DNA of 64,000 nt, from the sequence record PQ471515.1. The stretch is one strand, 5' to 3'. Each line of letters begins with the position of its first letter. Position 1 is the first letter of the stretch. The translations under genes were made by a program, and so were the position numbers. Positions 39,890 through 60,192 of this stretch are shown in pieces. The notes under the pieces were generated by a model. That model was given only the letters and a program-made list of their open reading frames with translations, did not search any database and had not been told where the DNA came from.

Positions 39890-41014
39890 TTAATTATCTA
39901 AGCCACCAATTACACTGAACTGTGTGGTAACGTCTGAACTATTATCTATGTAAGTTCTTCTACCAACATAATATAGTTGTCCTTTTGCTTGAATAAAAGT
40001 TACGGTCCCTGTATTAAATGATATAATATCATTGTATGTAATGTCAGGTGGTAGTGATGCTGATAACGCAGTAACTTTACTTAATGCAGCACTAGTACTA
40101 CCATTTATACCAGCAGCAATACTACCAGTACCATAGAACTTATTATCTTTACCAATGAATACGTTGGCTGATGCTTGTGTAGCTGATGTTATTGCCTTAC
40201 CAATTTGGAATGCGGTTCCTATGGTGTATGGTGTGCTCCTGGCAGCGTCTATGCTTTGTGTATATCCATCCCCTAGCTGACCATTAACTTTGTCACCACA
40301 TGAGTATAGAGTACCATTGAGGCTGTATATGATCCCACGGTTAGAGAAGCTAACAGCTTCTGCATTAGTCCATACTGGTGCGGTGTATGAGTTTACACGA
40401 CTAGCGGTCGTTCCTAGACCTAGTATACCATATGTGTTATCACCACATCCAAACCATTGTCCAGAACTGTTTTGATAGAACACTGAACGTTCTGTTGATT
40501 CCATGCGTACAGCATCCACAGCACCACTTTTAACGAACGAAGTTGATGAGGATGTAGTACCAGTACCCAATGCACCATAAGTGTTTGTACCAATCGCATA
40601 GATTGATCCTAGTGGTGTCATAACACGTATACAGTTATATCCCAATTGAACTTTACATTCAAATAGGTTGTCCCATATTTCAGGAACAGCAGAAAATAAA
40701 TTTGTAATTTCGAACCATGATGTTGTCGAACCAGTTAATCCTATACTGCTTTTGTTTCCTAAAATGAAAACAGTTTTGTCCTTCTTAATTATCCATGATG
40801 ATAGAAAGCCTATCTCACAGCTATGAACATTTGATTCGATTTGGGTAATATAATACTTAACGGTGTTATCACCCATAAATGCCGCAGCACCGGATGCAAA
40901 AAGGTTTCCAGTTTGTTTATTTAAAATGTAGTTATTGTTTCCATATACACTAACATCATAAGAACTTTCTTGTTTTTCGTTCCCATAATCAAATAACAAT
41001 ACGAAAGGTAACAT
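39890..41014 (-). CDS. MLPF-tag protein 17, RCC1/BLIP-II-like beta-propeller
   Basis: MLPFVLLFDYGN; YAIGTNTYGALGTG and FGCGDNTYGILGLG repeats. Confidence 0.75.
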   Translation of the reverse strand: MLPFVLLFDYGNEKQESSYDVSVYGNNNYILNKQTGNLFASGAAAFMGDNTVKYYITQIESNVHSCEIGFLSSWIIKKDKTVFILGNKSSIGLTGSTTSWFEITNLFSAVPEIWDNLFECKVQLGYNCIRVMTPLGSIYAIGTNTYGALGTGTTSSSTSFVKSGAVDAVRMESTERSVFYQNSSGQWFGCGDNTYGILGLGTTASRVNSYTAPVWTNAEAVSFSNRGIIYSLNGTLYSCGDKVNGQLGDGYTQSIDAARSTPYTIGTAFQIGKAITSATQASANVFIGKDNKFYGTGSIAAGINGSTSAALSKVTALSASLPPDITYNDIISFNTGTVTFIQAKGQLYYVGRRTYIDNSSDVTTQFSVIGGLDN

Positions 41015-41030
41015 GATAAAATCTCCTTGT

Positions 41031-41045
41031 GTTATACTTTATTTA
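41031..41045 (-). promoter_or_regulatory. Putative late promoter motif
   Basis: TAAATA-AAG-TATAAC. Confidence 0.6.
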
Positions 41046-41091
41046 ATCATTTTATAATGTACAATTTTACAGCGATTTAATTGAGGTACTC

Positions 41092-41742
41092 ATGAATAAA
41101 AGAAGTAAGTTCTATCAAGAATATTTCACTAAACAGAAACGATTCACAAAAAAATACTTTACATCATCCCACCGACCAGTTGCAAGTTACAAACGTCCTA
41201 ATACTAACTATCTTACTGGTGGCAAGTTTAGTGCAAAGTTCGAATTACTTATGCGTGAAAAGAATATCAAGATGCATTACGCAGAGACGAGAAAAAACTC
41301 ATCAATTATTTGCTCTGATTTTCTTGAGTACGGTTGCTTAACTTATAAATTCAATGATGTATATTTGTATATTGATGTTGATTGTAACAGTACTCTTATG
41401 TTTGAGATTTCAATTCACCCAAATCACAACCGTTATATAAACATTAACTTGATTGATAAAGTACTGATTGGTATATCTAGTACTGATGGTGGTGGATTTG
41501 AATTTATTGCTTCAAAATATGATGAAGATTTCGTACTTTACCCAGTACTTGATGATGTGAAAGATATTCTCAATTCATTAAAAGGAAGTCAATACAAATT
41601 ATCTGAAGAACAGCTATTTCAGTACTCACTTATTCATGATGATATCGAGATATACTTAGAGTGTGCGAGAATATTGGAGTATCTTTATAATGAACTAACA
41701 ACAACTGGTAAAGTGACTGCATTCACATTATATAATATGTAA
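41092..41742 (+). CDS. Hypothetical protein, EE-FQ family with basic N-terminus
   Basis: SEEQLFQYSLIHD motif; GAGG SD; only + strand gene in the array. Confidence 0.7.
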   Translation: MNKRSKFYQEYFTKQKRFTKKYFTSSHRPVASYKRPNTNYLTGGKFSAKFELLMREKNIKMHYAETRKNSSIICSDFLEYGCLTYKFNDVYLYIDVDCNSTLMFEISIHPNHNRYININLIDKVLIGISSTDGGGFEFIASKYDEDFVLYPVLDDVKDILNSLKGSQYKLSEEQLFQYSLIHDDIEIYLECARILEYLYNELTTTGKVTAFTLYNM

Positions 41743-41768
41743 AAGAAAAGCCAGTACATAGTACTGGC
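41741..41768 (-). terminator. Intrinsic terminator
   Basis: GCCAGTAC-tat-GTACTGGC-TTTTCTTTT on minus strand. Confidence 0.8.
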
Positions 41769-41774
41769 ATTATA

Positions 41775-42911
41775 TTAAACTGGTGGAGAATTATATGGCT
41801 CAAATTTATAAGTTGTCGTAGCAGTACCAGCAATGGCGTTGTTAGCTAGTATGTACATAGTCCTATAGTCGATTACCACCACAGTAATACTACCACCAAA
41901 AGCATAGTCTGTTATGTTATTAGTGTTGAATGGTAAATTAGATGAACTGGTCCATGTATTAGCTGTTGTGCTATTTGTACCATTGGAATAGCCGACACTA
42001 GATGCACCAGTTGTCCATAAGTTTCCATCATTGAACAACGATACATGGTTAGCTGTATATGATTTATTAGGTATAGAACTATCAATTGGTGTATTCCAAA
42101 CTTTAGTAACCCATGTTGTAACTGCTGTATTATTAGTAACGCCATTACCTAATGAACCATTTATTGGTATACCTCTTATATAAGAAGTGTTAGTACTAGG
42201 GTCAACATATCCAAATGTATATGTATCAAATGCAAATTGAAAACAATCAGAACTCGGTAATGTGTACAGTAATGTATATGAAGACGTGTTTATTGATGAA
42301 TTTGTACCGTTCACGCCTTGGTATAAAATACCACTAGCCAATATTTGATTATTATTTTTTGTTATAGTGTTCATTGATGGATATGTTTTCACATCACGCA
42401 CATCATTAGTCACATATGTTTGTGTTGATAATGCAACGTTACTACCATTACCTATAACCCCTGTATTTGCACCACTCCCATAAAGTGAACCATCATTCAA
42501 AAGAACCATTGTAACATTACCATTTCCCGTAATTGTTTTAATATTACTAACATCCACCGCAGCAAATACAGTTGATGTTAAATCAGTGAAACGTGTATAA
42601 TGTGATGTTGTGCCATTGATTGGTGTCGCAAAACCAGAATACAATATTCTATTTTCTTTGGTAATAAGGAATGTTCCAGTAACACCATTTGAATGGATAT
42701 CAACAATATTATCTCCCATTAATACCCAATCACTTACGAATGTTGTTGTACCAGTACCTAACCCATGTGTAGTGTTGTAACCACGTCCATACACTCTACC
42801 ATCACTGAGTAATGTTACCACACATTGACCACCACCACCAAGGATAACTTTTTGGATAGTACTCTTTACTTTTATATTCCCGTACTTAACCATTCTTGCA
42901 AAAGGTAACAT
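41775..42911 (-). CDS. MLPF-tag protein 16, RCC1-like
   Basis: MLPFARMVKYGN; LLSDGRVYGRGYNTTHGLGTG. Confidence 0.75.
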   Translation of the reverse strand: MLPFARMVKYGNIKVKSTIQKVILGGGGQCVVTLLSDGRVYGRGYNTTHGLGTGTTTFVSDWVLMGDNIVDIHSNGVTGTFLITKENRILYSGFATPINGTTSHYTRFTDLTSTVFAAVDVSNIKTITGNGNVTMVLLNDGSLYGSGANTGVIGNGSNVALSTQTYVTNDVRDVKTYPSMNTITKNNNQILASGILYQGVNGTNSSINTSSYTLLYTLPSSDCFQFAFDTYTFGYVDPSTNTSYIRGIPINGSLGNGVTNNTAVTTWVTKVWNTPIDSSIPNKSYTANHVSLFNDGNLWTTGASSVGYSNGTNSTTANTWTSSSNLPFNTNNITDYAFGGSITVVVIDYRTMYILANNAIAGTATTTYKFEPYNSPPV

Positions 42912-42926
42912 CCTTTTTCTCCTTTA

Positions 42927-44072
42927 TTAATTATTCATACCCTTAGTACTCAATAACACATATTCATATTGTGATGTTGAGTAACCTGGTAATAGATCTG
43001 TTGAGCTTGAATATATTCCTGTACCATATAATAACCCAGAATTAGATACAACATAACTATTGTCATTATTAATTGCATATCTTGGATTTGAATTGTCAGG
43101 TATAATTGTATTATTAACAATAAAACTACTGCTATTATTATTAATTCCGGCTCCAGATTTGCCTGTTGAACCTGTACAATACCATTTGTTTTCATAAAGG
43201 ACAACAGTTAGGTATGTATCGTTAAAAATGTAACTAGGTGCTGTCGAGAAATTTGGGAGTTTATATAAAGTTGTTCTACCTACTTCACCAATATTGTTAC
43301 TTTTAACTCCATTCCCAAGTTGACCATTAAACTGTGAACCTGCACAATATAAACCATCAGATTTAGAAATAAAGAAACAATTAATATTAGCAGTAAAATC
43401 AATTACATCAGAACTTATTAATTTTTTTGAACTCACTGTTTTAGTTCCTAATATCTGACCAACACTTCCATTTCCACACCCGTAAAAATCATTTGAAGTA
43501 TCCAAATACCAAAAAGTACCCGTTTGTTCTGGACTTAGGGAAATTTTTTTGGCATTCGTGTATACTGTGTTTAATTGGAATGCTCGTGCTCCAGTACTAC
43601 CATGTTGGCCTGAATAGTTAATACCTCCACTGTAAACTTCTCCAGATGACGCTAGTGCGAAAATATCATATCCATTTAGAGCAACATCAACGATTTGTTC
43701 TGGATTTAAACCAGCATTAATAAAAGTAGTTGTTCTGTCAGTGAATGTGGTAGTTGATGATGCTGTACTTCCAGTTAAGCCACGAATAGATCCACTTGAA
43801 AGAACTCGGTTGTCAAATGTTGTACAAATCGTAGTACCTGAATTACTCCATATATTTTTTATTCCAGTTGTACTTAAAACCCAATCACCAGTATATATAG
43901 TATTACTGGCTGAACCATTACCAAACGTACTACCTAAGTTTTGACCTCTTATGTATAAATCCCCACTATCAAGTAGCACCATACAATATAAACCTCGTGC
44001 AACAATCTTTTTAATACCTGGCAATGGCTGCACTTCATTTCCGTAATCAAACATTCTAACAAAAGGTAACAT
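42927..44072 (-). CDS. MLPF-tag protein 15, RCC1-like
   Basis: MLPFVRMFDYGN; LYCAGSQFNGQLGNG. Confidence 0.75.
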   Translation of the reverse strand: MLPFVRMFDYGNEVQPLPGIKKIVARGLYCMVLLDSGDLYIRGQNLGSTFGNGSASNTIYTGDWVLSTTGIKNIWSNSGTTICTTFDNRVLSSGSIRGLTGSTASSTTTFTDRTTTFINAGLNPEQIVDVALNGYDIFALASSGEVYSGGINYSGQHGSTGARAFQLNTVYTNAKKISLSPEQTGTFWYLDTSNDFYGCGNGSVGQILGTKTVSSKKLISSDVIDFTANINCFFISKSDGLYCAGSQFNGQLGNGVKSNNIGEVGRTTLYKLPNFSTAPSYIFNDTYLTVVLYENKWYCTGSTGKSGAGINNNSSSFIVNNTIIPDNSNPRYAINNDNSYVVSNSGLLYGTGIYSSSTDLLPGYSTSQYEYVLLSTKGMNN

Positions 44073-44084: not shown

Positions 44085-45203
44085 CTATATTACTATTTTT
44101 TCTTCAGTATATATTAATGCTTTATCTGAGGTAGTGTATCCAGGTAAAGGATACAATCTACCTGCAACATAACATATGTCATTTTCTATATAATATGATG
44201 AATATGTACTGTCAAAGAATATAGGCTCTATTGAAGTTGGTGCATTGATCATCTTAGTAAATGCTGGAACCGGACCAGGTGCAAAACTTGCATTTGTACT
44301 GGTAAACCCATAATTATCGGAAACTGCGGACACATAATAATCGGTTCCATTCTGGATTATTATTCTTGCTGCAACCGAACTACTATTATTAACGATTTTA
44401 GGAAATGCAAATGTGGCTGCATTATATGTGAATGGTAACGAACAAGAAACTAAAGTTGCAGTTGCACCAGACACTGATGTTCCATATTTATTGTTGACGT
44501 TTCCTCTGGCAAATACACCACTAGCGGTATTAAGCACTACAACAGCAACTGTTGCTGAATAACCCAAAACCCCTGTTGCAATTTGGGTAAACCCAGTGGA
44601 ACTAGGTATTTGACTAGCGTTTGGGTTTCCAGAACCATAAAGAACACCAGAATTAGTTAATGCCCATACGTTTGCATACATTAATTTGAATGACTTGACA
44701 TCACTGACTATCGTATTTTTAACAAAAGATGTACTACTACTTGGTGTGCTCATTCCAAATATATATTGCGTATTCGTACCAATGAACCACAATTCTCCTA
44801 AGTTTGTCAGTACCCCTATACAGTTACGTAACGCATTAACTTGAACATCAATTATTGTACCAGTTACTGCATTAAAAATCGAACTACAATTAACAAATAT
44901 ATTACTTGTTGGATAACCAAATGCAGTAGTTTCACCGCTGCACATATACTGACCGTCTTTGAGTTTTAAAAATGTCCACGTAGGTGAATAGTAAAAGTCA
45001 TCAACATTTTCATATATCAAAGTCCACTTATCAGCCGATGTAGTAACATCACCAAACTTACCATTTGTATTTGGTCCCGCAGCATATAATTTACCACTTG
45101 TTGTTAAGAATAAAATACCACTAGTTCCGTCCGTGACCATTTTACGTATTTTCGTAACTTCTCTTACATTTCCGTACTTAACCATTCTTGCAAAAGGTAA
45201 CAT
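44085..45203 (-). CDS. MLPF-tag protein 14, RCC1-like
   Basis: MLPFARMVKYGN; LTTSGKLYAAGPNTNGKFG. Confidence 0.75.
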   Translation of the reverse strand: MLPFARMVKYGNVREVTKIRKMVTDGTSGILFLTTSGKLYAAGPNTNGKFGDVTTSADKWTLIYENVDDFYYSPTWTFLKLKDGQYMCSGETTAFGYPTSNIFVNCSSIFNAVTGTIIDVQVNALRNCIGVLTNLGELWFIGTNTQYIFGMSTPSSSTSFVKNTIVSDVKSFKLMYANVWALTNSGVLYGSGNPNASQIPSSTGFTQIATGVLGYSATVAVVVLNTASGVFARGNVNNKYGTSVSGATATLVSCSLPFTYNAATFAFPKIVNNSSSVAARIIIQNGTDYYVSAVSDNYGFTSTNASFAPGPVPAFTKMINAPTSIEPIFFDSTYSSYYIENDICYVAGRLYPLPGYTTSDKALIYTEEKIVI

Positions 45204-45273: not shown

Positions 45274-46623
45274 TTACAACAAATGTATTTCTGTGAGTGT
45301 TTGATATGTTACACCGTTGTACACACCTCTCCAATATACCTTACCTTCAGTACTAACCACTAATAATCCATATGTTGTAAACCCAAGAGTACCACCAACA
45401 TACATAGCATCTTTGATTTTAATACCAATGTCTTCATATGTAAATGAAGCGACTGCTCCCGCTTGCCATGAAGGACTAGCATAGTAATCACTATAAACAC
45501 CATGTGCTTTATATATTGATGTTGTTCCGGGTTCAAAAATTACAGTTCCACAGTAGTTCATTCGTATTTTGGTACTGGATGAAGTTGGTACATTTATACC
45601 TACATCATCTTTAATCCCTGTAGTTAGGACGTTAAAACCACCCGCTACACGGTTGACGTCATCCGCACCGATTAGAAACATACCAACGTTGTAGCCCATA
45701 TAATACACACTACTTGTACCATTCCAGAAAGAAAAACCACCACCATTACCACAGCGATATAGTTGTGAATTTGAGCAGTACATCATGCCTTCGTTTGTTG
45801 CATCAAAATCATCTGCTGTTCCGATTACAGCCACTGTAGTCCACGTTTTAATCACTTGGTTTGCACTAGCTGGTTTTTGTATACCATATCGTATATTATA
45901 TCCCTTACCTACGATTGTACCATCTTCTAATTTGGCATAAAGTACAGGTCTATTACCAACAAAATACACATTATTATGTGACATGTCTATTGTGCATCTT
46001 AATGAAACTGCTTTTTGTGTCAATTGATTATCTTTAGTAAAAGAAGTAAAGTAGTAATCTGATGTGGAGTTGTTTATTAAACCTTGAATCGACAAACCCA
46101 TATACCAGATTTCACCATTAGTGTTCAATGCTGCCAAAATACAACTATATTTTGAAGTGTATGCTGGGGTTAATGATGTTGCTGGACCTTTATCATATCC
46201 ACCACAGAATACCATTTCCACAACTTCACCTACGTTAGAAAAATAAGAAGATACATTTATAAAACCATTTGTTATAAAAGGTGCTGTAGTTATACTTGAA
46301 TGTGTGAATATTCCATTTGCATATACACCACAAAAATGATATGAACCATCATTATCTTTAACTATTATTCCATTTGATAGTAGCCAAAAATTGTTTACAT
46401 TTTTTCGTACTAATTCAATTCCTGTACCATTGGTTGGTGTTATACCAAAAGAAACATATTTTGTTTGACCAATACCATATAAATTTCCATTTGATGCTAA
46501 TATTGCACCAAACCAATTACCACCACCATTCCTATCATGACCCATACCAATGGAGTCGAATTTCTTCACAGTAGAGGCTTCAACTTTATTTCCGTACTTA
46601 ATCATTCTCGCAAAAGGTAACAT
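45274..46623 (-). CDS. MLPF-tag protein 13, divergent RCC1-like
   Basis: MLPFARMIKYGN at 46623 (track start lies in the promoter); ASNGNLYGIG, LNTNGEIWYMG. Confidence 0.7.
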   Translation of the reverse strand: MLPFARMIKYGNKVEASTVKKFDSIGMGHDRNGGGNWFGAILASNGNLYGIGQTKYVSFGITPTNGTGIELVRKNVNNFWLLSNGIIVKDNDGSYHFCGVYANGIFTHSSITTAPFITNGFINVSSYFSNVGEVVEMVFCGGYDKGPATSLTPAYTSKYSCILAALNTNGEIWYMGLSIQGLINNSTSDYYFTSFTKDNQLTQKAVSLRCTIDMSHNNVYFVGNRPVLYAKLEDGTIVGKGYNIRYGIQKPASANQVIKTWTTVAVIGTADDFDATNEGMMYCSNSQLYRCGNGGGFSFWNGTSSVYYMGYNVGMFLIGADDVNRVAGGFNVLTTGIKDDVGINVPTSSSTKIRMNYCGTVIFEPGTTSIYKAHGVYSDYYASPSWQAGAVASFTYEDIGIKIKDAMYVGGTLGFTTYGLLVVSTEGKVYWRGVYNGVTYQTLTEIHLL

Positions 46624-46694: not shown

Positions 46695-47432
46695 TTAGAC
46701 TGAATTGTTAGGATAATATCTCCCACGTCCCCATATTATTCGCACAGCACCACCACCAGCAGCCGTATAAGAAGAATTATCCCATATACTACCACCACCA
46801 CCATACCTCTTACCAGCACCACCACTACCAGCACCACCATTATATGAACCATCGTAGCTACCACCAATACCATTAGCACCTTGAACAATGATACCAGTAC
46901 CACCACCCGTACCAATGAACGAGGTATTATAGAATGCACCACCACCACCGCCACCGCCAGCACCATTTTCACCAGTGATTGCATTTCCGTTACCACCTTT
47001 ACCAGTGTAGCCACCAGCACCACCACCAATGACTGCACCACCACTTAAACCAGTGTTGCCACCATTACCACCACCATCATTAATAGCGTTAGCAGCTTTT
47101 CCACCTAGTCCACCAACCGTATATGCACCAGTGAAGCTAACACATAGTTTTTCAGTTCCACGATATAAACCGTTTTCAACTGCTGTAGTAGTGTTGGGAT
47201 GTGTAAGAGAAACACTTAAGTACTCACCACCAGAAACCGGAATATTATTACGCCACGATAAGCCGCCACCAGCACCACGTTGACCACCCGGAGAAATAAC
47301 ACATACTGATATTTCGGTAACGCCAGCAGGAACTGTAAATTGTGTTGTTCCTATTGTCGTGATTAATTGTTCACCATGTGGCTTATATTCAATTTTATTC
47401 CCGAACTTAACCATTCTTGCAAAAGGTAACAT
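46695..47432 (-). CDS. MLPF-tag protein 12, glycine-rich domain
   Basis: MLPFARMVKFGN; GTTQFTVPAGVTEI and GAGGGGGG runs typical of phage fibre Gly-rich domains. Confidence 0.75.
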   Translation of the reverse strand: MLPFARMVKFGNKIEYKPHGEQLITTIGTTQFTVPAGVTEISVCVISPGGQRGAGGGLSWRNNIPVSGGEYLSVSLTHPNTTTAVENGLYRGTEKLCVSFTGAYTVGGLGGKAANAINDGGGNGGNTGLSGGAVIGGGAGGYTGKGGNGNAITGENGAGGGGGGGAFYNTSFIGTGGGTGIIVQGANGIGGSYDGSYNGGAGSGGAGKRYGGGGSIWDNSSYTAAGGGAVRIIWGRGRYYPNNSV

Positions 47433-47502: not shown

Positions 47503-48636
47503 TTAAGGTTTATTTTTATAATTAATTTCTACATAGTTACGTTGTGTTCCAGTATATCCTGGAACATTCCCTATATTTCCATTACCTGCACCAAACAGAC
47601 GTTCTCCGACTGCAAAATATGTCCCATAGAAACAACCATCAAACACAGGAACATCATTATAATTTGATATGTAATTATCCATTGAATCCATTCTAGTGTA
47701 TGTAGTCAGAGTTACATTTGTACCTATACCATATGCACCATAAGGGTTAGTACCAGCAACATAATACCCAGTGGGTGTACATATTACTGGTGAATTTGCC
47801 CCTGATCTCGTGTGGATAAATCTAAATGTACCTTCAGGTACTGGTGCTTCTTTACTGAATAATGTTGTAGCTACTACTGGGTAATCAATACCATAACTAT
47901 TACCACTCAACCACGTTTTACCATCACTATCTTTGAATAATGAACAGGATTGTGTGCATCCGAACAGATTCAAATTGGTTACATTTGGAAATTTACTAAT
48001 TTGTGTATATACCAGAACTGTGGTTGCGGCAGCACTACCAAGTTGTCCACGACCATTATCACCCGCACTGTACATGTACCCATCGGTCTTTAATATTATA
48101 CTAGCGTTTCCTAAAATATCAAAATCAACAACATCCGTTTGTGTTAATGTAGCTATAGGATAACGAAAATTCACTGCCTCACCAGTACCAAATTGACAAT
48201 TGGTGTTTACCCCACATCCATATAAGTTGCCGTTTTGCATTAATATAAACAAACCTGTTGTCATTTTAATTTTCTTAATATTAAGAATATCTATATCTTG
48301 GAATATGTGTGTTACATTTACAAATGTGGTTGAGTTAACAGTACTTGAACCATAATAAGAACCGTTCCCGCTACCAAAGAATTCATCGCCTTTTCTGTAC
48401 ATTGCACATAGACTGCCACCCCATACATCATCAACTCCAGTGTCAATTTGAATAACTGAAGTAACACTAGTTGTTGCACCAGTGCCAAGTTCACCACCTG
48501 AATTGAATCCAAAACCATACAAATCTCCACTTTCGGTGAGCACCAAAACACTGTTATTGGTTGTGCATGAAATCTTTTTGATATTATTAGATGGTCTTTT
48601 ATTTCCGTACTTAACCATTCTTGCAAAAGGTAACAT
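47503..48636 (-). CDS. MLPF-tag protein 11, RCC1-like
   Basis: MLPFARMVKYGN; YSAGDNGRGQLGS, YGFGFNSGGELGTG. Confidence 0.8.
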   Translation of the reverse strand: MLPFARMVKYGNKRPSNNIKKISCTTNNSVLVLTESGDLYGFGFNSGGELGTGATTSVTSVIQIDTGVDDVWGGSLCAMYRKGDEFFGSGNGSYYGSSTVNSTTFVNVTHIFQDIDILNIKKIKMTTGLFILMQNGNLYGCGVNTNCQFGTGEAVNFRYPIATLTQTDVVDFDILGNASIILKTDGYMYSAGDNGRGQLGSAAATTVLVYTQISKFPNVTNLNLFGCTQSCSLFKDSDGKTWLSGNSYGIDYPVVATTLFSKEAPVPEGTFRFIHTRSGANSPVICTPTGYYVAGTNPYGAYGIGTNVTLTTYTRMDSMDNYISNYNDVPVFDGCFYGTYFAVGERLFGAGNGNIGNVPGYTGTQRNYVEINYKNKP

Positions 48637-50797: not shown

Positions 50798-51745
50798 TTA
50801 TGTGAACTTATACATAACAGTGCTTCTATCGTTCGCACCACCACCACCAAAAAATGAATACGCTTCACGTTTTCCAGCAATATAACCGTACCATGTGTAG
50901 TAGGCAGAAGAAGTGTTAGTTCTTATACGTGTCCATGTCCCATTAGGTTCACGTTTAGTGACAAATGTACCCAAAATATAATATAATGTTCCATCGACAA
51001 TTATGAATCCTGCACCAGACGAAGTAATAGGAGAAAAAGATGGAATTACTTGCGTGAACGCATTTGTTGACGGATCATAATTATACATTGTACTACCTAT
51101 TACTAGATATACTAACCCTTCATAAAAAATAACACTAGGGGATTCAACGTTTAGTGTTGGGGTAGTTATTCCAGATCTAACAGTTCTCCATACTTTGGTA
51201 ATATAATTATATGCAACAATAACTTCCTTTACACTACTAGACTGACCACCAAAATAAAAAATTTCATTCCCAATACATACTCCTGCATGGTTATACCTCG
51301 CAGGTGGTCTTCCACTATCATTTGAAATAATTTCTATTGAATTAGTACCAACCTTGTGACGAAAGAATTGAGAAGATGCGTTATTGCTTGAGTTCGCCCC
51401 ACCAAAACCATATATATATCCATCAGGTGTATAAACCAATGGGGTAGATCTTAAATTTCTCAAATTACTAGAAGGAATCTGATAAAACGTATTATCTGAC
51501 GCATTATAATAAAAGAAATCATTTAAGTAAGTAGATCCAGTTCCAGTTATACCTCCTCCAGTTCCAGTTATACCTCCATAAAAATATACATATGGAAACT
51601 CTTCTACATTTGTTGAACATGATGACGTATAATTCCTTCCGGGTGGATTATACCCTGTACTATTGAATGTTATCTGTTCTGATATTCCCAAAAATACGCT
51701 AGGAGCAATATTCCCATAATCAAACATTCTTACAAAAGGTAACAT
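50798..51745 (-). CDS. MLPF-tag protein 8, Kelch-repeat beta-propeller
   Basis: MLPFVRMFDYGN; PPARYNHAGVCIGNEIFYFGG, YIYGFGG, YDPSTNAF. Confidence 0.85.
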   Translation of the reverse strand: MLPFVRMFDYGNIAPSVFLGISEQITFNSTGYNPPGRNYTSSCSTNVEEFPYVYFYGGITGTGGGITGTGSTYLNDFFYYNASDNTFYQIPSSNLRNLRSTPLVYTPDGYIYGFGGANSSNNASSQFFRHKVGTNSIEIISNDSGRPPARYNHAGVCIGNEIFYFGGQSSSVKEVIVAYNYITKVWRTVRSGITTPTLNVESPSVIFYEGLVYLVIGSTMYNYDPSTNAFTQVIPSFSPITSSGAGFIIVDGTLYYILGTFVTKREPNGTWTRIRTNTSSAYYTWYGYIAGKREAYSFFGGGGANDRSTVMYKFT

Positions 51746-51755: not shown

Positions 51756-52886
51756 TTAATTTAATAATGCCCCTGGCAAATCCACTTTGACGAATTGTGC
51801 ATATGCTGAGGAATTTTGATCAAAGTTTGGTCCCAATCCATAAAATGAGCTAATGCCGTCTTCATTTGTGTATATGATATAAACGTTCTTTACATCATTT
51901 CCGCATATAAATCGAATGTCTTTCGTTTGTGTTCCCGCTGGAACATTACGAAGGTTAACAACGCCATTACTTGCATTGTTATCAGCCGACGCAATTGGTA
52001 ATTGATTTTGACCATATTGACCACGCATATTTTTTGCATCTAAACCAAACACAGTATCTGATACCGCACCAACTTTCAAAAATGAACCAAAACTATTATT
52101 GAATGACTTTGGAAATGTACCACTATAAACACTTCTCCCATCTGATAATACCGCTGAACTGAATTTCCCGCTATTCGATATGGCAAATTCATTGTAAGGA
52201 AGTGTACCCATTTTGGTATATACAGAATATGAATTAGTGGAAGTATTATCAATAATCTTATTACCATTATATCCAATACCATACTGGTATCCGGCAGCAT
52301 CTTGAACTATACACAAAGGACCACTTGGGGTTTGTGTCAACGAAACAACACGTTCAACTTGTATATCACCAAATGTATTTCTTCGCCATGTTCTATCTAT
52401 TATAGTACTAGTATTACCCAAAGATAATGCCACACTATATAATAGATTGTTTTCAGTAAAAATGGCAACATAATATGCGTGGTTAATAACTTGCTTCATC
52501 CCAGCATCAATAACTTCCTGTGGAATATGATCAGTAACATCCAACCAATCAAGGTTAGATGATGCAATATCTGGAGTACTGAATTTGTCAAATCTAGTTG
52601 AGCCACAAACTAGCACTCTATCATCATTTGTCAAAGCCACTGTGCTAGTCTGCATATTAGAACTGAATGATTTAACATTACTAATGTTAGACTTGTACCA
52701 ACCCTTATCAGCAGCACCCACCGTGAATCCGGTTCCCATTGATCCACTTGTACTTGTACCATAAGCCCACATCTCACCACTATATGTTAGTGCCATACAG
52801 TGGCTTCCATTTGCTTGGAAATCCTTTATACCAGTGGGAGCAGCCACTGTATTCCCATAATCAAACATTCTAACAAAAGGTAACAT
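51756..52886 (-). CDS. MLPF-tag protein 7, divergent RCC1-like
   Basis: MLPFVRMFDYGN at 52886 with GGAG SD; ALTYSGEMWAYGTSTSGSMGTG. Confidence 0.7.
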   Translation of the reverse strand: MLPFVRMFDYGNTVAAPTGIKDFQANGSHCMALTYSGEMWAYGTSTSGSMGTGFTVGAADKGWYKSNISNVKSFSSNMQTSTVALTNDDRVLVCGSTRFDKFSTPDIASSNLDWLDVTDHIPQEVIDAGMKQVINHAYYVAIFTENNLLYSVALSLGNTSTIIDRTWRRNTFGDIQVERVVSLTQTPSGPLCIVQDAAGYQYGIGYNGNKIIDNTSTNSYSVYTKMGTLPYNEFAISNSGKFSSAVLSDGRSVYSGTFPKSFNNSFGSFLKVGAVSDTVFGLDAKNMRGQYGQNQLPIASADNNASNGVVNLRNVPAGTQTKDIRFICGNDVKNVYIIYTNEDGISSFYGLGPNFDQNSSAYAQFVKVDLPGALLN

Positions 52887-52956: not shown

Positions 52957-52961
52957 TAATG

Positions 52962-54143
52962 TTATGGTAAAATAATAGCTTGTAACGAACTCATACCCAA
53001 TGTTGGGACACTCGCCTGTGGTGCTGGTGAATTCAATTTTGGTGATGAAACCGCATATGACATTCCTGAACCCAAATCTGGATCAAAAACTACAGCACAA
53101 TAATTCCCACTATATATAAGTCCATTCTTGTATCCTTGTGCACTTTGAATGCATTTCGTGAACGTACCAATATCTGTAGTGGCATTTATTAAGTTCCTCC
53201 CACGATAACCGCAGGTGTATATGAAATTATCATCGCCTATGTACATACTAGAATCCCCAGAAGAACTACATAGATACGACATATAAGCACGCATGTTTTT
53301 AGGAGCAACTGACAATGTACCTGCATAGAATTTATTATTCGAACCCGTAATATCACCATCACCCAATGCACCAAAACTTCCCCAGCCAGTACCGTAATAT
53401 CTCTTATCACTCAAAAATATAATACAGTTGTTATTACACATCTTGATTTGATATATCAATGAAGGATCAACCCCAGGGAATGATTCAGTGAATGTTAGAA
53501 CAGCCGGATCAGTACTAGCATTACATTGATGATATGTATTAGTACCAGCGGACAAGATTGTTCCATTAGCTAACAGAATTCTCGCAGTACCAGTACCAGC
53601 AGTACAAGCAACTGCACTTCCTGCACTTCCGGTGTATATTTGTCTGAAAGTAAAGAAACCAACAGTTTTACTTCCCTGCCCACTCCAACCAGTATTATCA
53701 ACTCCACACGCCCATACTGAACCATCTTGCATGATCATCATTACACCAAAGCGTTCTATTGAAATATAAACAATCTTCGTTGTATCAACTGCACTAAATC
53801 TAGAAGTTATATCAGTCCATACCTTAACACTTACCGCCGTCGCACTGGAAGTAGGATCTTCACCAGCTATCATTATCCTCCCATTGTTAGTAAGATACAT
53901 TGTCTGACTATAACCAGTACTACAAAACTTAACACTATCAGTCTCTGGAACTTTTAACCACTCGTTGTAACGTGTTACGTTAGTGTTATTACCTAACTGA
54001 TAATAGTTATTCATCCCAGATACATATAACACACCATCCTTTATTAAACTATAAGTCGCACTATAGTCACTACAGGTATAACGTGTACCCACAGGTCGCT
54101 CAACGACGTTCCCATAATCAAACAATCTAACAAAAGGTAACAT
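52962..54143 (-). CDS. MLPF-tag protein 6, RCC1-like
   Basis: MLPFVRLFDYGN; YVSGMNNYYQLGN, YGTGWGSFGALGDG. Confidence 0.75.
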   Translation of the reverse strand: MLPFVRLFDYGNVVERPVGTRYTCSDYSATYSLIKDGVLYVSGMNNYYQLGNNTNVTRYNEWLKVPETDSVKFCSTGYSQTMYLTNNGRIMIAGEDPTSSATAVSVKVWTDITSRFSAVDTTKIVYISIERFGVMMIMQDGSVWACGVDNTGWSGQGSKTVGFFTFRQIYTGSAGSAVACTAGTGTARILLANGTILSAGTNTYHQCNASTDPAVLTFTESFPGVDPSLIYQIKMCNNNCIIFLSDKRYYGTGWGSFGALGDGDITGSNNKFYAGTLSVAPKNMRAYMSYLCSSSGDSSMYIGDDNFIYTCGYRGRNLINATTDIGTFTKCIQSAQGYKNGLIYSGNYCAVVFDPDLGSGMSYAVSSPKLNSPAPQASVPTLGMSSLQAIILP

Positions 54144-54208: not shown

Positions 54209-54216
54209 ACCTATTA

Positions 54217-55338
54217 TTAAAAGGGCAACGGTAACTCAGTAAAAGTACTTACGTCCGGTAAACCATACATTGAATTAGCATCACCACAGTAATACCACTT
54301 CGTAGAATCATGTACCACCGATAAACGCTGTGCACATAACACTTCCTGTATGTCATTAAACACCATCGGGACTAACTCATATGTATCCGCAAATGAAGAT
54401 ACACCACCACTCGCATGAAAAGTATTCGTCCCAGCATAAAATAACTGATTAGTGTTCTTACCCACAGCAAATGTCATCAATATCCCATCATTCGCCCATA
54501 AAGAAGAAAACTTATCAACACTACCAGAAAGCTCTGTGTAAGTACTCGTAATGGCACTCGCAGCCGCCGCATTACCCATCTGTTTATTCAAGTTCTGTCC
54601 AGCAATAAAATATCTCGTGCGTGCACTAGAATCAGTATATAATAACCCAGTGTTCGTAGTCATCATTCCAATGTCCTTAATCGTCATACCAGTCTGTGAA
54701 TAACTTAGATACGAAGTTAAATTAACATTATTACCCAACGAACCGTTATCACTCATACCACAACGATGTAATATACCACTTGTATCAACGTAGATTGTAC
54801 TAACTAAACTCGTATACAACTCTTGTACATTATTCGCAATAAACACAGCAGTCGCCTTATTACTAACCCCACCAAATGATAGGTTATTATCAAATCCCTT
54901 AGCGTATAATTGATTATTAGTAGTCAATAATCCAATCGTGAAATAAGACATTTTCATATCCCTTACTGTACTCAAATCTACTGCTCCAAATTGGTGCGTA
55001 ACATCTGTCCATGTGAAAATCTGTGCACTACCAACACCACCCGTTTCAAACCATTTGTCACCACAGTACAATATGCGATTACCCTTAGTAAAGATAACTG
55101 TTACCAATCCACTACCACACGCAAACTTTACATCACTTCTAACCTTCGTCCAATTAAGTACATAGGTAGTGGTGTTATTACCTATACCTAACTTGCCATA
55201 ACGGTTATAACCACGCACCCACAAATCACCACTCTTAGTAATTAATAGTAATGCGTCTCCTGTACTTATTATTCGAAATCCCGAACTAGGATCAGGTGTA
55301 ATATTTCCATAATCAAACAATCTAACAAAAGGTAACAT
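54217..55338 (-). CDS. MLPF-tag protein 5, RCC1-like
   Basis: MLPFVRLFDYGN; LWVRGYNRYGKLGIG. Confidence 0.75.
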   Translation of the reverse strand: MLPFVRLFDYGNITPDPSSGFRIISTGDALLLITKSGDLWVRGYNRYGKLGIGNNTTTYVLNWTKVRSDVKFACGSGLVTVIFTKGNRILYCGDKWFETGGVGSAQIFTWTDVTHQFGAVDLSTVRDMKMSYFTIGLLTTNNQLYAKGFDNNLSFGGVSNKATAVFIANNVQELYTSLVSTIYVDTSGILHRCGMSDNGSLGNNVNLTSYLSYSQTGMTIKDIGMMTTNTGLLYTDSSARTRYFIAGQNLNKQMGNAAAASAITSTYTELSGSVDKFSSLWANDGILMTFAVGKNTNQLFYAGTNTFHASGGVSSFADTYELVPMVFNDIQEVLCAQRLSVVHDSTKWYYCGDANSMYGLPDVSTFTELPLPF

Positions 55339-55347: not shown

Positions 55348-56541
55348 CTATGATTGCCATAACTGCGTTGGCATTAATGTTAATGTTTTAATTACGGAAG
55401 TACCATCCGGTAAGTTACCACCTGAACCGTTAAAGCCCCCACATGCATATAATTTATAATCTTTAGTTATAATTATTGTTCTGGACCAGTCTTTGGATGC
55501 CATAAGAACATTGTCATATCCACCCTGTATCGCACTTAAAGAAAACGCCCCCCACGAAGTAATTACTGTTGTATTTCCCGTCCCTTCTTGACCATATGTA
55601 TTGATGCCTGCACTCCTGACATATGATGGGTATTGAGCCATAGGTGCACCAATTGTTGAGTTACCCATATTACTAGGACACAGGAAACCATCACTAATAT
55701 TCACTATAACCTGTGAATTCTGAACTGTAGTTAATTGGTTTGTAGTTGAAGTAGTACCATTCCCAGCTTGTCCAGAATTGTTTCTACCACTCCAGTACAC
55801 CCTACCGGCAGTGAACCACCAGGTAACATCATAAGTAGCACTTATATAATCGACGTTGGATCGTATTAATTTATTAGTAAAAACGTATGAGCTAGTCCCA
55901 CCACCACTTTCACCAAAGTTATCCTTACCACAAAACCATGCTTCTTTATTTGTTTTGAGATAGTGCGTACCCTGTAATGAACACGCCAATTGAGAAACTT
56001 CACCCATACCAGTAACAACTGTTAGTACTGGAATGGAATTTTGGTTACCTGTTCCACATTCGGCATTTGCATTTTTACCACAAACAACTACTCTTCCATC
56101 GTGTAGTAATATTCTAGTACTTTCACCTATATGTACACTCTTGATTAAATTAGCGTGTACATTTATTTTGTTAAATGCGGCAGTAACATCAGTCCATGTT
56201 CTAAAATAACCATTAACTGGAGTTGCATCTCCATAATCGGGGAATGCTACAGTATTCCCTGTGAAATATATTCTATTATCCAAGTCAATCATCAATGAGC
56301 CATGAACGCCTAACCAAAAGGCTGCACAGTGCGTTGCCAGTACTGTAAAAGTAGAAACTGTCGATTGATTCCCTAGACCTAATTGGCTCAAGTTATTACC
56401 ACCATAACCGTATAGTGTATTCGTGGGCTTATGTAGATACATAGCATTAGTATAATGTTGCTGTAAAACATCAGTGAACTCAACTGGATCAGGAATAGGC
56501 AGTTTATTCCCGTATTTAACCATTCTTGCAAAAGGTAACAT
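55348..56541 (-). CDS. MLPF-tag protein 4, RCC1-like
   Basis: MLPFARMVKYGN; WFCGKDNFGESG, WSGRNNSGQAGNG, SAGINTYGQEGTG. Confidence 0.8.
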   Translation of the reverse strand: MLPFARMVKYGNKLPIPDPVEFTDVLQQHYTNAMYLHKPTNTLYGYGGNNLSQLGLGNQSTVSTFTVLATHCAAFWLGVHGSLMIDLDNRIYFTGNTVAFPDYGDATPVNGYFRTWTDVTAAFNKINVHANLIKSVHIGESTRILLHDGRVVVCGKNANAECGTGNQNSIPVLTVVTGMGEVSQLACSLQGTHYLKTNKEAWFCGKDNFGESGGGTSSYVFTNKLIRSNVDYISATYDVTWWFTAGRVYWSGRNNSGQAGNGTTSTTNQLTTVQNSQVIVNISDGFLCPSNMGNSTIGAPMAQYPSYVRSAGINTYGQEGTGNTTVITSWGAFSLSAIQGGYDNVLMASKDWSRTIIITKDYKLYACGGFNGSGGNLPDGTSVIKTLTLMPTQLWQS

Positions 56542-56558: not shown

Positions 56559-56607
56559 ATTATACTATATTTAATCAAAAATAAATGCCAGTACACAGTA
56601 CTGGCAT
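56559..56607 (-). promoter_or_regulatory. Terminator + late promoter cassette
   Basis: ATGCCAGTAC/GTACTGGCAT hairpin, T-tract, TAAATA-TAG-TATAAT. Confidence 0.75.
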
Positions 56608-56611: not shown

Positions 56612-57790
56612 TTATCGGTTAAATTTAAAATCTGTTATGTGTGTCCATGTATGATTTAATGGTGTACTCATTGGTGTAAAGCCAGCAGGGTCTGACAAAG
56701 CTGTACCACGTGCGTACATAAATTGATTGCCAGTACAATCCATTATAGCATAAGAACGTTTTGCTGTGCCACATTTGAACCCAACTGCACTACTTGGGGT
56801 CGGTAATACTTCAAATGTAGGTGCATTTGAACTACCACCCCCATCTTTTGTTCCAGCTATGTACAGAACTCCATTAGTATCAATGATTAAGTTAGTCCAA
56901 TATACTTGTTCTCGTCCAGCAAAAAAATATGTTAAATCACCTGGTACAAATGGTAACGTTCCTTTATATATTGTGGTATTAACATCCACTGGTGCACCAG
57001 CTACACCCCATGAACTCATATAGTTTCTCCCACTTGCGTAGAATGTAGTTCCTTTACCGTAAAGTATTAATGTTGCTAGACTTGTTCGCATTGCATTATA
57101 TTCAAACTCAGGATCATCAGTAGCGTCCTTAAAAATCTGTGTCCATGTTGTTATATTGCCAGTAGTTGTAACACCCATTTGATAATAATAATTATCACCA
57201 GTAGCATAGAATTCTTTAGGGCCAGTTTGTACAATTGCATTCCTATTAGTTAACCAAAAATCTAATGTATTAGTCTTGATCTTGGTTGGTGTGTAATTCG
57301 CCACGGTATTTCCTTTTCCGAAATAACCATTAGCGTTATTTCCATGACCCCATAAATCACCATTAGTTGTGCGTAGGAATAATGTACCAATATTGAATCC
57401 AACTTTTTCTATAGTACTTATGTCAATACCAACAGTCGTGTACTTCGTTGTAAAATCTTGAAAAGTACTCCAATAATTAGATGAACCATTAAACATGGTT
57501 TGTTTACCAGTGTACTTCACTTTATTATCTTTAGTGATAAGTAATGTCCCCCACACTGACGCGAACATCAACTTAACATTTTCCATAACAAAGTATGGCT
57601 TACCGTATGCTGACGCGGTAGAGTTCAAACCTAATAGTTGTCCATTATTACTACAACCCCATACTTCGCCGTTATCCAAAAGCATCAACATAGTAGGTTT
57701 GCCAGATGATACATCCAAAAAGAAATCTTTTGGTGTTGGTACACCAGGTGTAATATTTCCATAATCAAACATTCTAACAAAAGGTAACAT
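56612..57790 (-). CDS. MLPF-tag protein 3, RCC1-like
   Basis: MLPFVRMFDYGN; LWGHGNNANGYFGKG, YATGDNYYYQMG. Confidence 0.75.
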   Translation of the reverse strand: MLPFVRMFDYGNITPGVPTPKDFFLDVSSGKPTMLMLLDNGEVWGCSNNGQLLGLNSTASAYGKPYFVMENVKLMFASVWGTLLITKDNKVKYTGKQTMFNGSSNYWSTFQDFTTKYTTVGIDISTIEKVGFNIGTLFLRTTNGDLWGHGNNANGYFGKGNTVANYTPTKIKTNTLDFWLTNRNAIVQTGPKEFYATGDNYYYQMGVTTTGNITTWTQIFKDATDDPEFEYNAMRTSLATLILYGKGTTFYASGRNYMSSWGVAGAPVDVNTTIYKGTLPFVPGDLTYFFAGREQVYWTNLIIDTNGVLYIAGTKDGGGSSNAPTFEVLPTPSSAVGFKCGTAKRSYAIMDCTGNQFMYARGTALSDPAGFTPMSTPLNHTWTHITDFKFNR

Positions 57791-57807: not shown

Positions 57808-57854
57808 ATTATACTATATTTAATCAAAAATAAAAGCCAGTATCAAGTACTGGC
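57808..57854 (-). promoter_or_regulatory. Terminator + late promoter cassette
   Basis: GCCAGTA/TACTGGC hairpin, T-tract, TAAATA-TAG-TATAAT. Confidence 0.75.
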
Positions 57855-57860
57855 ATCGTA

Positions 57861-58970
57861 TTACTTGGGTAATGGAATTGTGGTCCATCTATTTGCGGCA
57901 ACGTCACCTGGTACATATGTAGGACTACCACTTACAGCAATAGTTTCATTACCATCATATACAACACTGAAGTTTGTGCACGTATACAACGCTGCGGCAT
58001 CTGGATTGTAATTTTCAAGTGTTAGTGTATTGGTGAACAAATTCAATGCAGTAGTTGAGCCGTTTTTACCATATGCACCTGTAGTATATATCTTTCCTTC
58101 TGTTGTTGAGTACATATTAACATATGACCCAGATGATGATTTAGCAATTTTATCTATCTTGCTATCTATTGTTTTAGAGTTAAATTGAAATGGATATACC
58201 TGTACGTTAGTATCTAAACCATTTCCCAGTTCCCCATTTAACTGCCACCCTGTGTGGTACATTCCCGCATTTGTATATGCAAGCGTACTATACGCATTAC
58301 CACCCATTATTTTAGTGCCAGATAATTTTAAACCAAACGATGTCCACTTACCAGTTTCATTTCCTATGGAACCATAAGCACTTGTACCACACGCACGAAG
58401 CTCGCCATTTGACGTTAGAAGCACTGTATTATTAACGTTACCAAATATATCAATAACCTGATTAGTGCCATTATTCAGTACTGAAGTAAAAGTACTCTGT
58501 GAGTAAGTACTACCTGAACCAACAGAACCATTTGTGTTCATACCTCTTCCATATACAATTTTACCATCAGCACTAACATAGTGCATTGAATCAAAACCAA
58601 TGGATATCATTTTAATATCAGATATATCTGGAAATGAAGAAGTTACATCTACTCCACCTAGTGGAATTGTATTATTTCCTAAACCTAATGAGACATTAGT
58701 TCCGTGCATTATAAATTTATCTTCTTTAAAATATAAAATATTATATCCACCAGCCCATGCATTATTAACGCCATTTGTAATCAGTACCCATTTATTTTGT
58801 GTAGTAGTTCCAGTAATATTTAACTGTTGATAGTTATTGATTCCACAACCATATAGCGATCCATCACCATATAGTACATATAAATTATCATATCCTGCAA
58901 TAACTTTCTTTATTTTTTTGGGTACAGGTGCTACATTCCCATACTTTAACATTCTTCCAAAAGGTAACAT
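57861..58970 (-). CDS. MLPF-tag protein 2, RCC1-like; close paralog of 48715-49824
   Basis: MLPFGRMLKYGN; same 369 aa length and colinear sequence as protein 10. Confidence 0.8.
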   Translation of the reverse strand: MLPFGRMLKYGNVAPVPKKIKKVIAGYDNLYVLYGDGSLYGCGINNYQQLNITGTTTQNKWVLITNGVNNAWAGGYNILYFKEDKFIMHGTNVSLGLGNNTIPLGGVDVTSSFPDISDIKMISIGFDSMHYVSADGKIVYGRGMNTNGSVGSGSTYSQSTFTSVLNNGTNQVIDIFGNVNNTVLLTSNGELRACGTSAYGSIGNETGKWTSFGLKLSGTKIMGGNAYSTLAYTNAGMYHTGWQLNGELGNGLDTNVQVYPFQFNSKTIDSKIDKIAKSSSGSYVNMYSTTEGKIYTTGAYGKNGSTTALNLFTNTLTLENYNPDAAALYTCTNFSVVYDGNETIAVSGSPTYVPGDVAANRWTTIPLPK

Positions 58971-58987
58971 TATTTTCTCCTTTATTC

Positions 58988-59037
58988 ATTATACTATATT
59001 TAATACAAAAAGAAATGCCAGTACACAGTACTGGCAT
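58988..59037 (-). promoter_or_regulatory. Terminator + late promoter cassette
   Basis: ATGCCAGTAC/GTACTGGCAT hairpin, T-tract, TAAATA-TAG-TATAAT. Confidence 0.75.
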
Positions 59038-59043
59038 ATTAAT

Positions 59044-60192
59044 TCATTGTATAAATGACATATCTACTTCTGTATAATTAAGAACGTTCTGTCCAGAAAT
59101 ACCACCCATTACTACTATTGCAAGGCCACAATAATATAATTTTCCAGTATCCGTAAGTATAAGTGATCCAGATGGACTGCGTACCAAATCACACGAACTA
59201 TTAAAAGAAGTATAAGAAGGAGTATAGGAGTACTGATTATTATTATTACCAACACCTAATTGCCCAAACCCATTCGTTCCAGAAGCATATAGAACTTCAT
59301 CTGCTTTGACAATATGTGATGCCATGTTACCAACACAAGTATATAGAGTATAAACTCCTGAACTCAATAATGTCGGAGTTTTATATTGTATATCTGTAGA
59401 TGTAGAAGTACCACCTGTACCAAATTCGTTCCCATATTGTGCACCGAACTGTTTACCACAAGCGTACAAATTATTATCCGATTTGATAAAAAATGTACTC
59501 TGATAACTTACATTAAAATCTATAACATCCGAAGAAATCATCGTCACCCCAGTAATAGAAGTTTGATTACCCGTGCCCAACTGATAGTAATAGTTAAAAC
59601 CACAACCCCATAAAGTATTATCTTCTTTTAGGTATATGTTACCAACTGCCTTTTTAACCGAAGTTATAGTATCTATCCTTTTGAATGTGTTAAAAGAATT
59701 AATGTTTGTACCATCACCAAATGATGATAGGTTCGAGTTATTGTTCGCTCCACAACAATACAATGTACCATCGTTTGTTATCAAATTTACCTTCATATCA
59801 TAAAAACTACTCATGTACTTTATATCAGAAACATTAATACCACCTGATGTTATCCACGTGGTACAGTCCGTCCACAAAGTTTTTCTATCAGTTACACCAG
59901 TGAATGCCTTCGTGTTACCAGTGATAAAAACTTTTCCAGTACCTTTCTCTTCATACAATTGACAATCACTACTGTTATCTTCCAATAGAACTCGTTTAAC
60001 ATTCTCCGCACAAAGAATAAATTTACTCGATGCTACACCTGTACCAGTACCCCAATTCGTCGCAGAAGATGCATACAACTTATCAGTATAAGTATCATGA
60101 AGATACATAGAATCACTGGAATATATTTTAAAACGCCCTTCTTTCTCAGGTATAATATTCCCATAATCAAACATTCTAACAAAAGGTAACAT
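59044..60192 (-). CDS. MLPF-tag protein 1, RCC1-like
   Basis: MLPFVRMFDYGN at 60192 with GGAGG SD; LWGCGFNYYYQLGTG, YASGTNGFGQLGVG. Confidence 0.8.
   Translation of the reverse strand: MLPFVRMFDYGNIIPEKEGRFKIYSSDSMYLHDTYTDKLYASSATNWGTGTGVASSKFILCAENVKRVLLEDNSSDCQLYEEKGTGKVFITGNTKAFTGVTDRKTLWTDCTTWITSGGINVSDIKYMSSFYDMKVNLITNDGTLYCCGANNNSNLSSFGDGTNINSFNTFKRIDTITSVKKAVGNIYLKEDNTLWGCGFNYYYQLGTGNQTSITGVTMISSDVIDFNVSYQSTFFIKSDNNLYACGKQFGAQYGNEFGTGGTSTSTDIQYKTPTLLSSGVYTLYTCVGNMASHIVKADEVLYASGTNGFGQLGVGNNNNQYSYTPSYTSFNSSCDLVRSPSGSLILTDTGKLYYCGLAIVVMGGISGQNVLNYTEVDMSFIQ

Follow-up and report, generated by a model that had tools for sequence, protein, structure and literature searches.

The tag-bearing gene array

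Within a 64,000-nucleotide stretch of sequence record PQ471515.1 (the window), we analyzed an array of 17 minus-strand genes at positions 39890–60192 whose products share a 12-residue N-terminal peptide, hereafter the tag, ahead of bodies of several different folds. At 99.7% identity, the window corresponds to the final 64 kb of the record of Escherichia phage Turkey3, which is a jumbo myovirus (361 kb) of the 121Q/PBECO4/phAPEC6 type (Asteriusvirus). In the Turkey3 record, the 17 genes are named "E3 ubiquitin-protein ligase HERC1," "regulator of chromosome condensation," "NS1A-binding protein" or "hypothetical protein."

All 17 proteins start with the motif M-L-P-F-x-(R/L)-(M/L)-x-x-(Y/F)-G-N, and their start codons lie directly downstream of a GGAG-type ribosome-binding site. 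Three mechanically called open reading frames (ORFs) ran upstream of the true ATG; correction places the gene ends at 46623, 52886 and 60192. Searching the window with a degenerate DNA pattern of the tag gave exactly 17 matches, all of them at array genes, against 0.00 expected from shuffled sequences, and the claim of the initial annotation that one N-terminal tag is common to 17 minus-strand genes thus stands. Mean pairwise identity was 0.80 for the tag versus 0.21 for the bodies. The latter are as rich in T, S, G, N and Y as had been claimed (41–56%) and near neutral in charge; by inspection only, none of the 17 proteins has a signal peptide. The genes and the regulatory elements between them are listed in Table 1.

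Table 1. Genes and predicted regulatory elements of the array, in window positions
Feature	Position	Strand	Details
g01, tag + RCC1-like propeller	39890..41014	-	374 residues; tag at 40979-41014; Pfam
g02, tag + RCC1-like propeller	41775..42911	-	378 residues; start 15 nt past g03 stop; Pfam
g03, tag + RCC1-like propeller	42927..44072	-	381 residues; start 12 nt past g04 stop; Pfam
g04, tag + RCC1-like propeller	44085..45203	-	372 residues; Pfam
g05, tag + divergent RCC1-like body	45274..46623	-	449 residues; PHROG 4219
g06, tag + glycine-rich domain	46695..47432	-	245 residues; CBB_144 homologue
g07, tag + RCC1-like seven-blade propeller	47503..48636	-	377 residues; Pfam, AlphaFold, Foldseek
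g08, tag + RCC1-like propeller	48715..49824	-	369 residues; start 9 nt past g09 stop; Pfam
g09, tag + Kelch propeller	49834..50724	-	296 residues; Pfam Kelch families; PHROG 12615 full length
g10, tag + Kelch propeller	50798..51745	-	315 residues; start 10 nt past g11 stop; Pfam
g11, tag + RCC1-like propeller	51756..52886	-	376 residues; Pfam
g12, tag + RCC1-like propeller	52962..54143	-	393 residues; Pfam
g13, tag + RCC1-like propeller	54217..55338	-	373 residues; start 9 nt past g14 stop; Pfam
g14, tag + RCC1-like propeller	55348..56541	-	397 residues; Pfam
g15, tag + RCC1-like propeller	56612..57790	-	392 residues; Pfam
g16, tag + RCC1-like propeller	57861..58970	-	369 residues; Pfam
g17, tag + RCC1-like propeller, first array gene	59044..60192	-	382 residues; Pfam
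Late-promoter-like motif before g17	60211..60223	-	matches late motif of phage CBB
Same motif, first six others	58990-59002, 57810-57822, 56561-56573, 54166-54178, 52910-52922, 50745-50757		
Same motif, last five others	48656-48668, 47452-47464, 46642-46654, 45223-45235, 41033-41045		
Terminator-like hairpin + T-run between g17 and g16	59015..59037	-	
Similar hairpins	57836-57854, 56585-56607, 54187-54210, 52930-52957, 50767-50791		
Similar hairpins, continued	48682-48700, 47478-47496, 46670-46685, 45249-45267, 41750-41768		

We tested the RCC1-like class against PF25390, PF00415 and PF13540. RCC1/WD40_RLD matches were found in 13 of the 17 bodies, with E-values down to 9e-34 that nevertheless stay under the PF25390 gathering score, and Kelch matches in two bodies, both above the Pfam cut-offs (g10, Kelch_6 at 44.9 bits with a cut-off of 25.3; g09, Kelch_2 at 24.6 with a cut-off of 21.3). 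The remaining two, g05 and g06, lack a Pfam match. The former matches PHROG 4219 over residues 1–442 (E = 5e-18), which brings the tally to the 14 RCC1-like, two Kelch and one glycine-rich bodies originally proposed. The g06 protein has no Pfam match at E <= 1 and belongs to a widespread phage glycine-rich family, many of whose members carry PF21722 (Gly_rich_2); Munch_544 of Salmonella phage Munch matches this model at 25.6 bits. The fold matches of g06 in BFVD are "glycine-rich domain-containing" proteins (E = 1.6e-13), some of them named tail fibre, baseplate or minor tail, and the best match to a solved structure, a fibre of cyanophage Pam3, is weak (Foldseek, E = 2e-3).

The AlphaFold model of g06 (mean predicted local distance difference test score, pLDDT, 93; predicted template modeling score, pTM, 0.90) has no secondary structure before residue 20, and the mean pLDDT of residues 1–10 is 49. 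In the model of g07 (pTM 0.85), residues 1–3 and 5–13 fall below a pLDDT of 50. In two unrelated folds, the tag is thus modeled as a free N-terminal extension outside the fold. Foldseek matched the g07 model to the propellers of UVR8, HERC2 and RCC1 (TM ∼0.78, E = 1e-23). By fold, the RCC1-like array bodies share the seven-blade propeller of the RCC1-like domain proteins (UVR8, RCC1, the HERC2 RLD), at an identity of just 13–19%. The names referring to chromosome condensation, HERC1 ubiquitin ligase and NS1A binding are transfers from the fold, and nothing supports them; the near-neutral charge may be set beside the annotation "DNA condensation protein," and the phAPEC6 authors themselves offered a DNA condensation role for the RCC1-like proteins as speculation. 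A search for proteins homologous to g07 returned only eight matches and had too little reach for divergent paralogues. The Kelch protein g10 matched Turkey3 only among 50,697 phage records (tblastn), and tblastn with CBB_551, a tagged LamG protein of phage CBB, matched its own phage only; by these searches both bodies are unique, with no donors indicated.

The motif TAAATA-N3-5-(A/T)ATA stands 18–23 nt before the ATG in 12 of the 17 genes. It matches the late motif, (A/C/G)TAAATA..., listed for CBB structural genes (Table S7 of PMC5259590), including the tag genes 537, 551, 552 and 553, which the CBB authors compared with the T4 late promoter. By this motif, the array genes are predicted to be late genes. 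The promoter cassette that the initial annotation had considered common to the array is therefore seen at 12 genes; the other five (g02, g03, g08, g10 and g13) start 9–15 nt past the preceding stop. A scan for sigma-70 promoters found fewer sites than in shuffled sequences and was uninformative. Terminator-like hairpins are located between the array units; the scan found 22 hairpins in all, against 8.5 expected in shuffles. Orthologues of >90% identity in the arrays of phAPEC6 and 121Q exist only for g06, g08 and g17, and the homology blocks stop at codons 13–18 of the adjoining gene, just past the tag. At the sequence level, these boundaries fit a swapping of whole bodies between conserved cassettes.

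Outside the array, the only late-promoter-like motif of the window (6513–6525) precedes a lone, untagged minus-strand gene at 5331–6488 (385 residues) among plus-strand genes, which may encode another late or virion protein. Within the array, the sole gene on the opposite strand is 41092–41742 (+), of 216 residues (PHROG 34359); ORFs of similar size lie at 62295–62954 in the window and, as gp011c, beside the phAPEC6 array. Upstream of g17, the segment 60295–63896 (+) contains ∼14 tandem ORFs of 59–82 residues, a family of small paralogous proteins with recurring motifs such as the C-terminal ...VLKLI(S/A)(I/M). GC skew is negative from the array start through the end of the window (40000–64000) despite the plus-strand genes at 60.3–64 kb, across which AT skew is strongly positive.

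Conservation and distribution of the tag peptide

The initial annotation had considered the alternative of a purely nucleotide-level conservation, with synonymous sites as conserved as nonsynonymous ones. At the seven conserved codons of the tag (2, 3, 4, 6, 10, 11 and 12), differences among the window genes were instead frequent at synonymous and rare at nonsynonymous positions (pS = 0.41, pN = 0.023, pN/pS = 0.056), while at the four variable tag codons pN/pS was 0.79. Between the window and CBB, the same seven codons gave pS = 0.64 and pN = 0.058. Across 65 tags from six phages, Pro3 is encoded by CCT, CCA and CCG in 35, 24 and six cases, Tyr10 by TAT and TAC in 31 cases each, and Gly11 by all four codons. 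Because synonymous sites vary while the conserved residues do not, these comparisons place the selective constraint on the tag peptide and not on its DNA.

A survey across jumbo phages, suggested by the initial annotation, found the tag in Mimasvirus (GAP32_001 and 002; CBB_144, 247, 536, 537 and 548–554), in Eneladusvirus (genes of Yersinia phage fHe-Yen9-04), in 16 genes of Salmonella phage Munch (variant MIPF.RI..YGN) and in Xanthomonas phage XaC1 (variant MFPIPIIS.YGN). The consensus over the related jumbo phages is M-(L/I)-P-F-x-R-hydrophobic-x-x-Y-G-N, and the variant is uniform per genome, with Leu2 in 17/17 genes here and Ile2 in 16/16 genes of Munch; MLPFPIISNTN is a further variant. 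Klebsiella phage K64-1 (Alcyoneusvirus), examined as a complete genome, has no tag ORF even by a loose pattern and has many tailspike genes instead. A scan of IMG/VR with the degenerate pattern found genuine tags, defined as those at an ORF start with an upstream ribosome site, only on 12 jumbo-phage contigs of 109–378 kb, with 2–11 tags per contig; every other match was either internal or part of a tiny ORF. When 1.84 billion representative proteins were queried with a profile built on the first 30 residues, 54 clusters matched at E <= 0.001, and in 53 of them the match was N-terminal.

The tag was found on at least six body types. In addition to those of the window, the relatives carry it on Gly_rich_2 proteins, on several subfamilies of LamG_3/concanavalin-like lectins and on at least three body types without a Pfam match. 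Tag proteins of 667–676 residues occur in uncultivated jumbo phages (contig L024, positions 140–2161; contigs L031 and L047), and that of L024, the only one of them scanned by Pfam, is a fusion of an RCC1-like and a Kelch propeller. Outside the clade, relatives of the bodies are untagged: alignments with RCC1-like proteins from phages of Clostridioides, Bacillus and Brevibacillus begin only at residue 19–36, and the glycine-rich homologue PVP-SE1 gp19 as well as most metagenomic homologues have other N-termini. Glycine-rich homologues of other phage lineages (P0013–P0041; L003:4998–5840) start with M-(L/I)-E-(L/M)-L, which could be a lineage-specific equivalent of the tag or just part of the glycine-rich family. 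For this start as a multifold tag, the first 50 kb of PVP-SE1 gave no sign: only gp19 has it.

Tagged proteins in virions

Published mass spectrometry detected 55 of the 554 CBB proteins in virions. Nine of the 11 CBB tag proteins are among them (144, 247, 536, 537, 548, 549, 551, 552 and 553; Fisher p = 2.4e-8), with sequence coverages of 51% for CBB_549 and 41% for CBB_536. The CBB authors singled out six structural proteins as absent from GAP32, and all six carry the tag. The virion proteome of phAPEC6 contains eight RCC1-like proteins (gp003, 005, 006, 007, 009, 010, 549 and 551) of the eleven that its authors count, and thus 8/11 of the phAPEC6 tag proteins. In a third phage, GAP32_001 was reported as structural by mass spectrometry. 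The published phAPEC6 record (MK817115, 1–18000) also holds intact tag ORFs that are unannotated, three of ∼370–400 residues and a glycine-rich one of 244 residues; if missing from the search database, they were undetectable by the published proteomics.

The peptide table of the CBB study also speaks to whether the tag is retained or cleaved. The supplementary list includes three tryptic peptides from within the tag, CBB_536 residues 7–20, CBB_553 residues 7–13 and CBB_548 residues 10–20, and hence the tag is not removed in mature CBB virions, at least from residue 7 on. We also looked for a prohead-protease site and found no conserved Glu or L/I-x-E in or after the tag; a Glu at tag position 9 is frequent only in CBB.

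The presence of such gene arrays in this type of phage, mentioned in the initial annotation, is indeed published, under the annotation "DNA condensation/RCC1," and so is the association of the proteins with virions. We found no mention of the shared tag in the literature on these phages, and as far as searched, its occurrence across folds is undescribed.

A probable retained address for virion incorporation

We consider it fairly probable that the 12-residue N-terminus is a retained peptide signal for the incorporation of binding modules into the virion. The array proteins would be compact modules, RCC1-like or Kelch propellers or a glycine-rich domain, and in relatives LamG-type lectins, each with a flexible N-terminal extension outside the fold. 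The extension would attach, and remain attached, to a single conserved site of a structural component of the virion, and one phage would thereby carry many different heads, in a set that changes fast. Blocks of DNA homology between phages are delimited by the conserved terminator, late promoter, ribosome site and tag, and therefore recombination could exchange whole bodies without losing the address. That the tag causes incorporation, what it binds and where in the virion the proteins sit are matters of inference. The docking or sorting signal proposed in the initial annotation is supported at its core by the peptide-level selection, the spread over genera and folds, the enrichment in virions and the tag peptides detected there; a cleaved capsid-targeting sequence of the T4 type is contradicted by the same peptides.

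As to location, we tentatively favor the outside of the particle, where the proteins may be displayed on the hair-like fibres of capsid and tail. Such fibres have been seen in 121Q, phAPEC6 and CBB, whose preparations also show detached hairy tails, and are without assigned proteins; the tagged bodies include lectin and fibre-like folds, and the near-neutral, T/S/G/N/Y-rich composition also points outward. A more specific version, which we hold with somewhat less assurance, is that of a plug and socket. One conserved socket, on the hair-like fibres of capsid and tail sheath or on the anchors of these fibres, might accept any protein that starts with the 12-residue tag. Up to 17 lectin-like heads could then coat a single virion as a mixture open to rapid exchange, the lineage-specific variants of the plug changing in step with the socket.

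Several observations weigh against incorporation by the tag or against the external location. The link between tag and incorporation is a correlation. Co-purification of abundant late proteins is possible, because virion preparations also yielded plainly nonstructural proteins (thymidylate synthase, RecA-like, single-stranded-DNA-binding and topoisomerase proteins in phAPEC6; a Clp protease subunit in CBB), and two of the 11 CBB and three of the 11 phAPEC6 tag proteins were undetected. None of the observed peptides covers tag residues 1–6, given that trypsin cleaves after R6 or K9. The low pLDDT of the tag may have trivial causes, and the alignment behind the g07 model has only 22 rows. Tags and hairs do not match throughout, GAP32 being tagged yet not described as hairy, and the heads of 121Q and phAPEC6 also have an inner body.

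The last point leads to the head interior, a location that we regard as unlikely, although not negligibly so. The tag might be an uncut capsid-targeting signal like that of T4 internal proteins, binding the prohead core and bringing the proteins into the head, for example into the rod of the inner body, perhaps to be ejected with the DNA as variable binders of host defense proteins; this account is likewise rather unlikely. The T4 capsid-targeting sequence, found on the internal proteins IPI, IPII, IPIII and Alt, suffices to bring cargo into the particle (PMC3012670, PMC9026906). Like the tag, it is an N-terminal peptide of ∼10–12 residues on otherwise unrelated, fast-evolving proteins of a T4-related myovirus, encoded at hypervariable loci: the T4 internal proteins are a diverse set with only the targeting sequence in common, and even near-identical genomes differ strongly in the array. 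The head genes resemble those of T4 and include a gp21-like prohead protease, an uncleavable T4 variant still targets, and propellers and Kelch domains are general protein-binding scaffolds. For the inner body, the phAPEC6 authors proposed the RCC1-like proteins. In T4, however, the sequence is a propeptide cut by the gp21 protease at L/I-x-E, whereas the tag has no conserved Glu or such a site and its residues persist in mature virions; the tag thus lacks the defining feature of a T4 capsid-targeting sequence, removal by the prohead protease. The T4 peptide did not come up as a named match in any search, none of which was aimed at it. The cargo differs as well, being described as basic and internal in T4 but neutral and lectin- or propeller-like here, and it is in external parts of virions that LamG lectins and fibre-like glycine-rich domains typically occur. 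Low peptide counts per protein also speak against an interior role.

We judge it improbable that the tag serves some other shared function, such as recognition by a phage chaperone or assembly factor, oligomerization or a role in the infected cell or in lysis, with detection in virions due to co-purification. The evident contaminants in the virion lists and the unstructured state of the tag in the models, similar to recognition peptides of many kinds, agree with this reading. It sits poorly with the strong enrichment in two independent phages and the structural member in a third, with the late, structural-type promoter predicted from the motif ahead of tag genes and with the high coverages of CBB_549 and CBB_536.

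A conservation owed to DNA or mRNA, the peptide being incidental, is very improbable. Under this reading, the shared start of the genes would be either a region for translation initiation or a cassette homogenized by gene conversion that serves duplication and shuffling. It is true that in Asteriusvirus 15 of the 17 genes have nearly the same first 13 bases and eight have near-identical 40 bases upstream, and the interphage homology blocks stop just past the tag. The excess of synonymous over nonsynonymous differences nevertheless runs counter to it, other genera use other codons for the same residues and the tag persists even next to differing upstream regions. Shuffling is probably helped by the cassette, which nevertheless cannot be the sole cause of the conservation, and as sole explanation the DNA or mRNA reading is largely refuted. 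The first alternative considered, that the tag is part of the fold, as the closing ("velcro") strand of an RCC1 propeller, has next to no probability and was rejected: the Y-G-N end faintly resembles a hairpin recurring in the internal repeats of these proteins, but the identical peptide occurs on Kelch, LamG, glycine-rich and Pfam-unmatched folds, Pfam RCC1 matches start downstream of it, alignments with the RCC1-like proteins from phages of Clostridioides, Bacillus and Brevibacillus start only past it, and it is unpacked in both AlphaFold models.

The retained address that we favor has counterparts in known systems. In secondary receptor-binding proteins of the KP32gp38 type, a conserved N-terminal peptide docks on the T4gp10-like branching domain of the primary receptor-binding protein and is required for the incorporation of the protein into the virion (PMC13352976). 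This peptide and the tag are alike as retained N-terminal modular connectors that are independent of the attached domain. They differ in scale, with ∼29 residues on one trimeric tailspike per phage in the KP32 type and 12 residues on up to 17 proteins per genome here, and in cargo, tailspikes and depolymerases there as opposed to RCC1 and Kelch propellers, a glycine-rich domain and LamG lectins. Tag genes are absent from K64-1, the relative whose tailspike system is hyperbranched. The dockerin–cohesin system of the cellulosome resembles the proposed one by analogy only, in having one conserved plug, many modules and a common scaffold. A dockerin is a folded domain of ∼70 residues, usually C-terminal, whereas the tag is a 12-residue linear N-terminal peptide on a virus particle. 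The inner-body and ejection families of the phiKZ type are also paralogous head proteins of jumbo phages, and an inner body exists in 121Q-type heads too; unlike the tag proteins, they are processed at S/A-x-E and no common N-terminal peptide has been reported for them. The phAPEC6 authors found no similarity to the phiKZ-type inner body among the phAPEC6 proteins.

For the annotation of these phages, misleading name transfers can be replaced by a testable statement, that the genes encode tagged virion proteins. With the tag, a whole class of virion accessory proteins can be recognized by a simple sequence rule, which holds in three named genera, in Munch-like phages, in XaC1 and in many uncultivated jumbo phages and extends to proteins of unknown fold and to ORFs that published records leave unannotated. 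The tag proteins are candidate components of the hair-like fibres and of the inner body, two structures of 121Q-type particles, and the tag would add a third, apparently sequence-unrelated example of short N-terminal address peptides in phage assembly. If the plug-and-socket model is true, a cellulosome-like principle would operate on a virus particle and components of the hairs would be named. One conserved address combined with a promoter cassette would show how a hypervariable array can swap whole domains.

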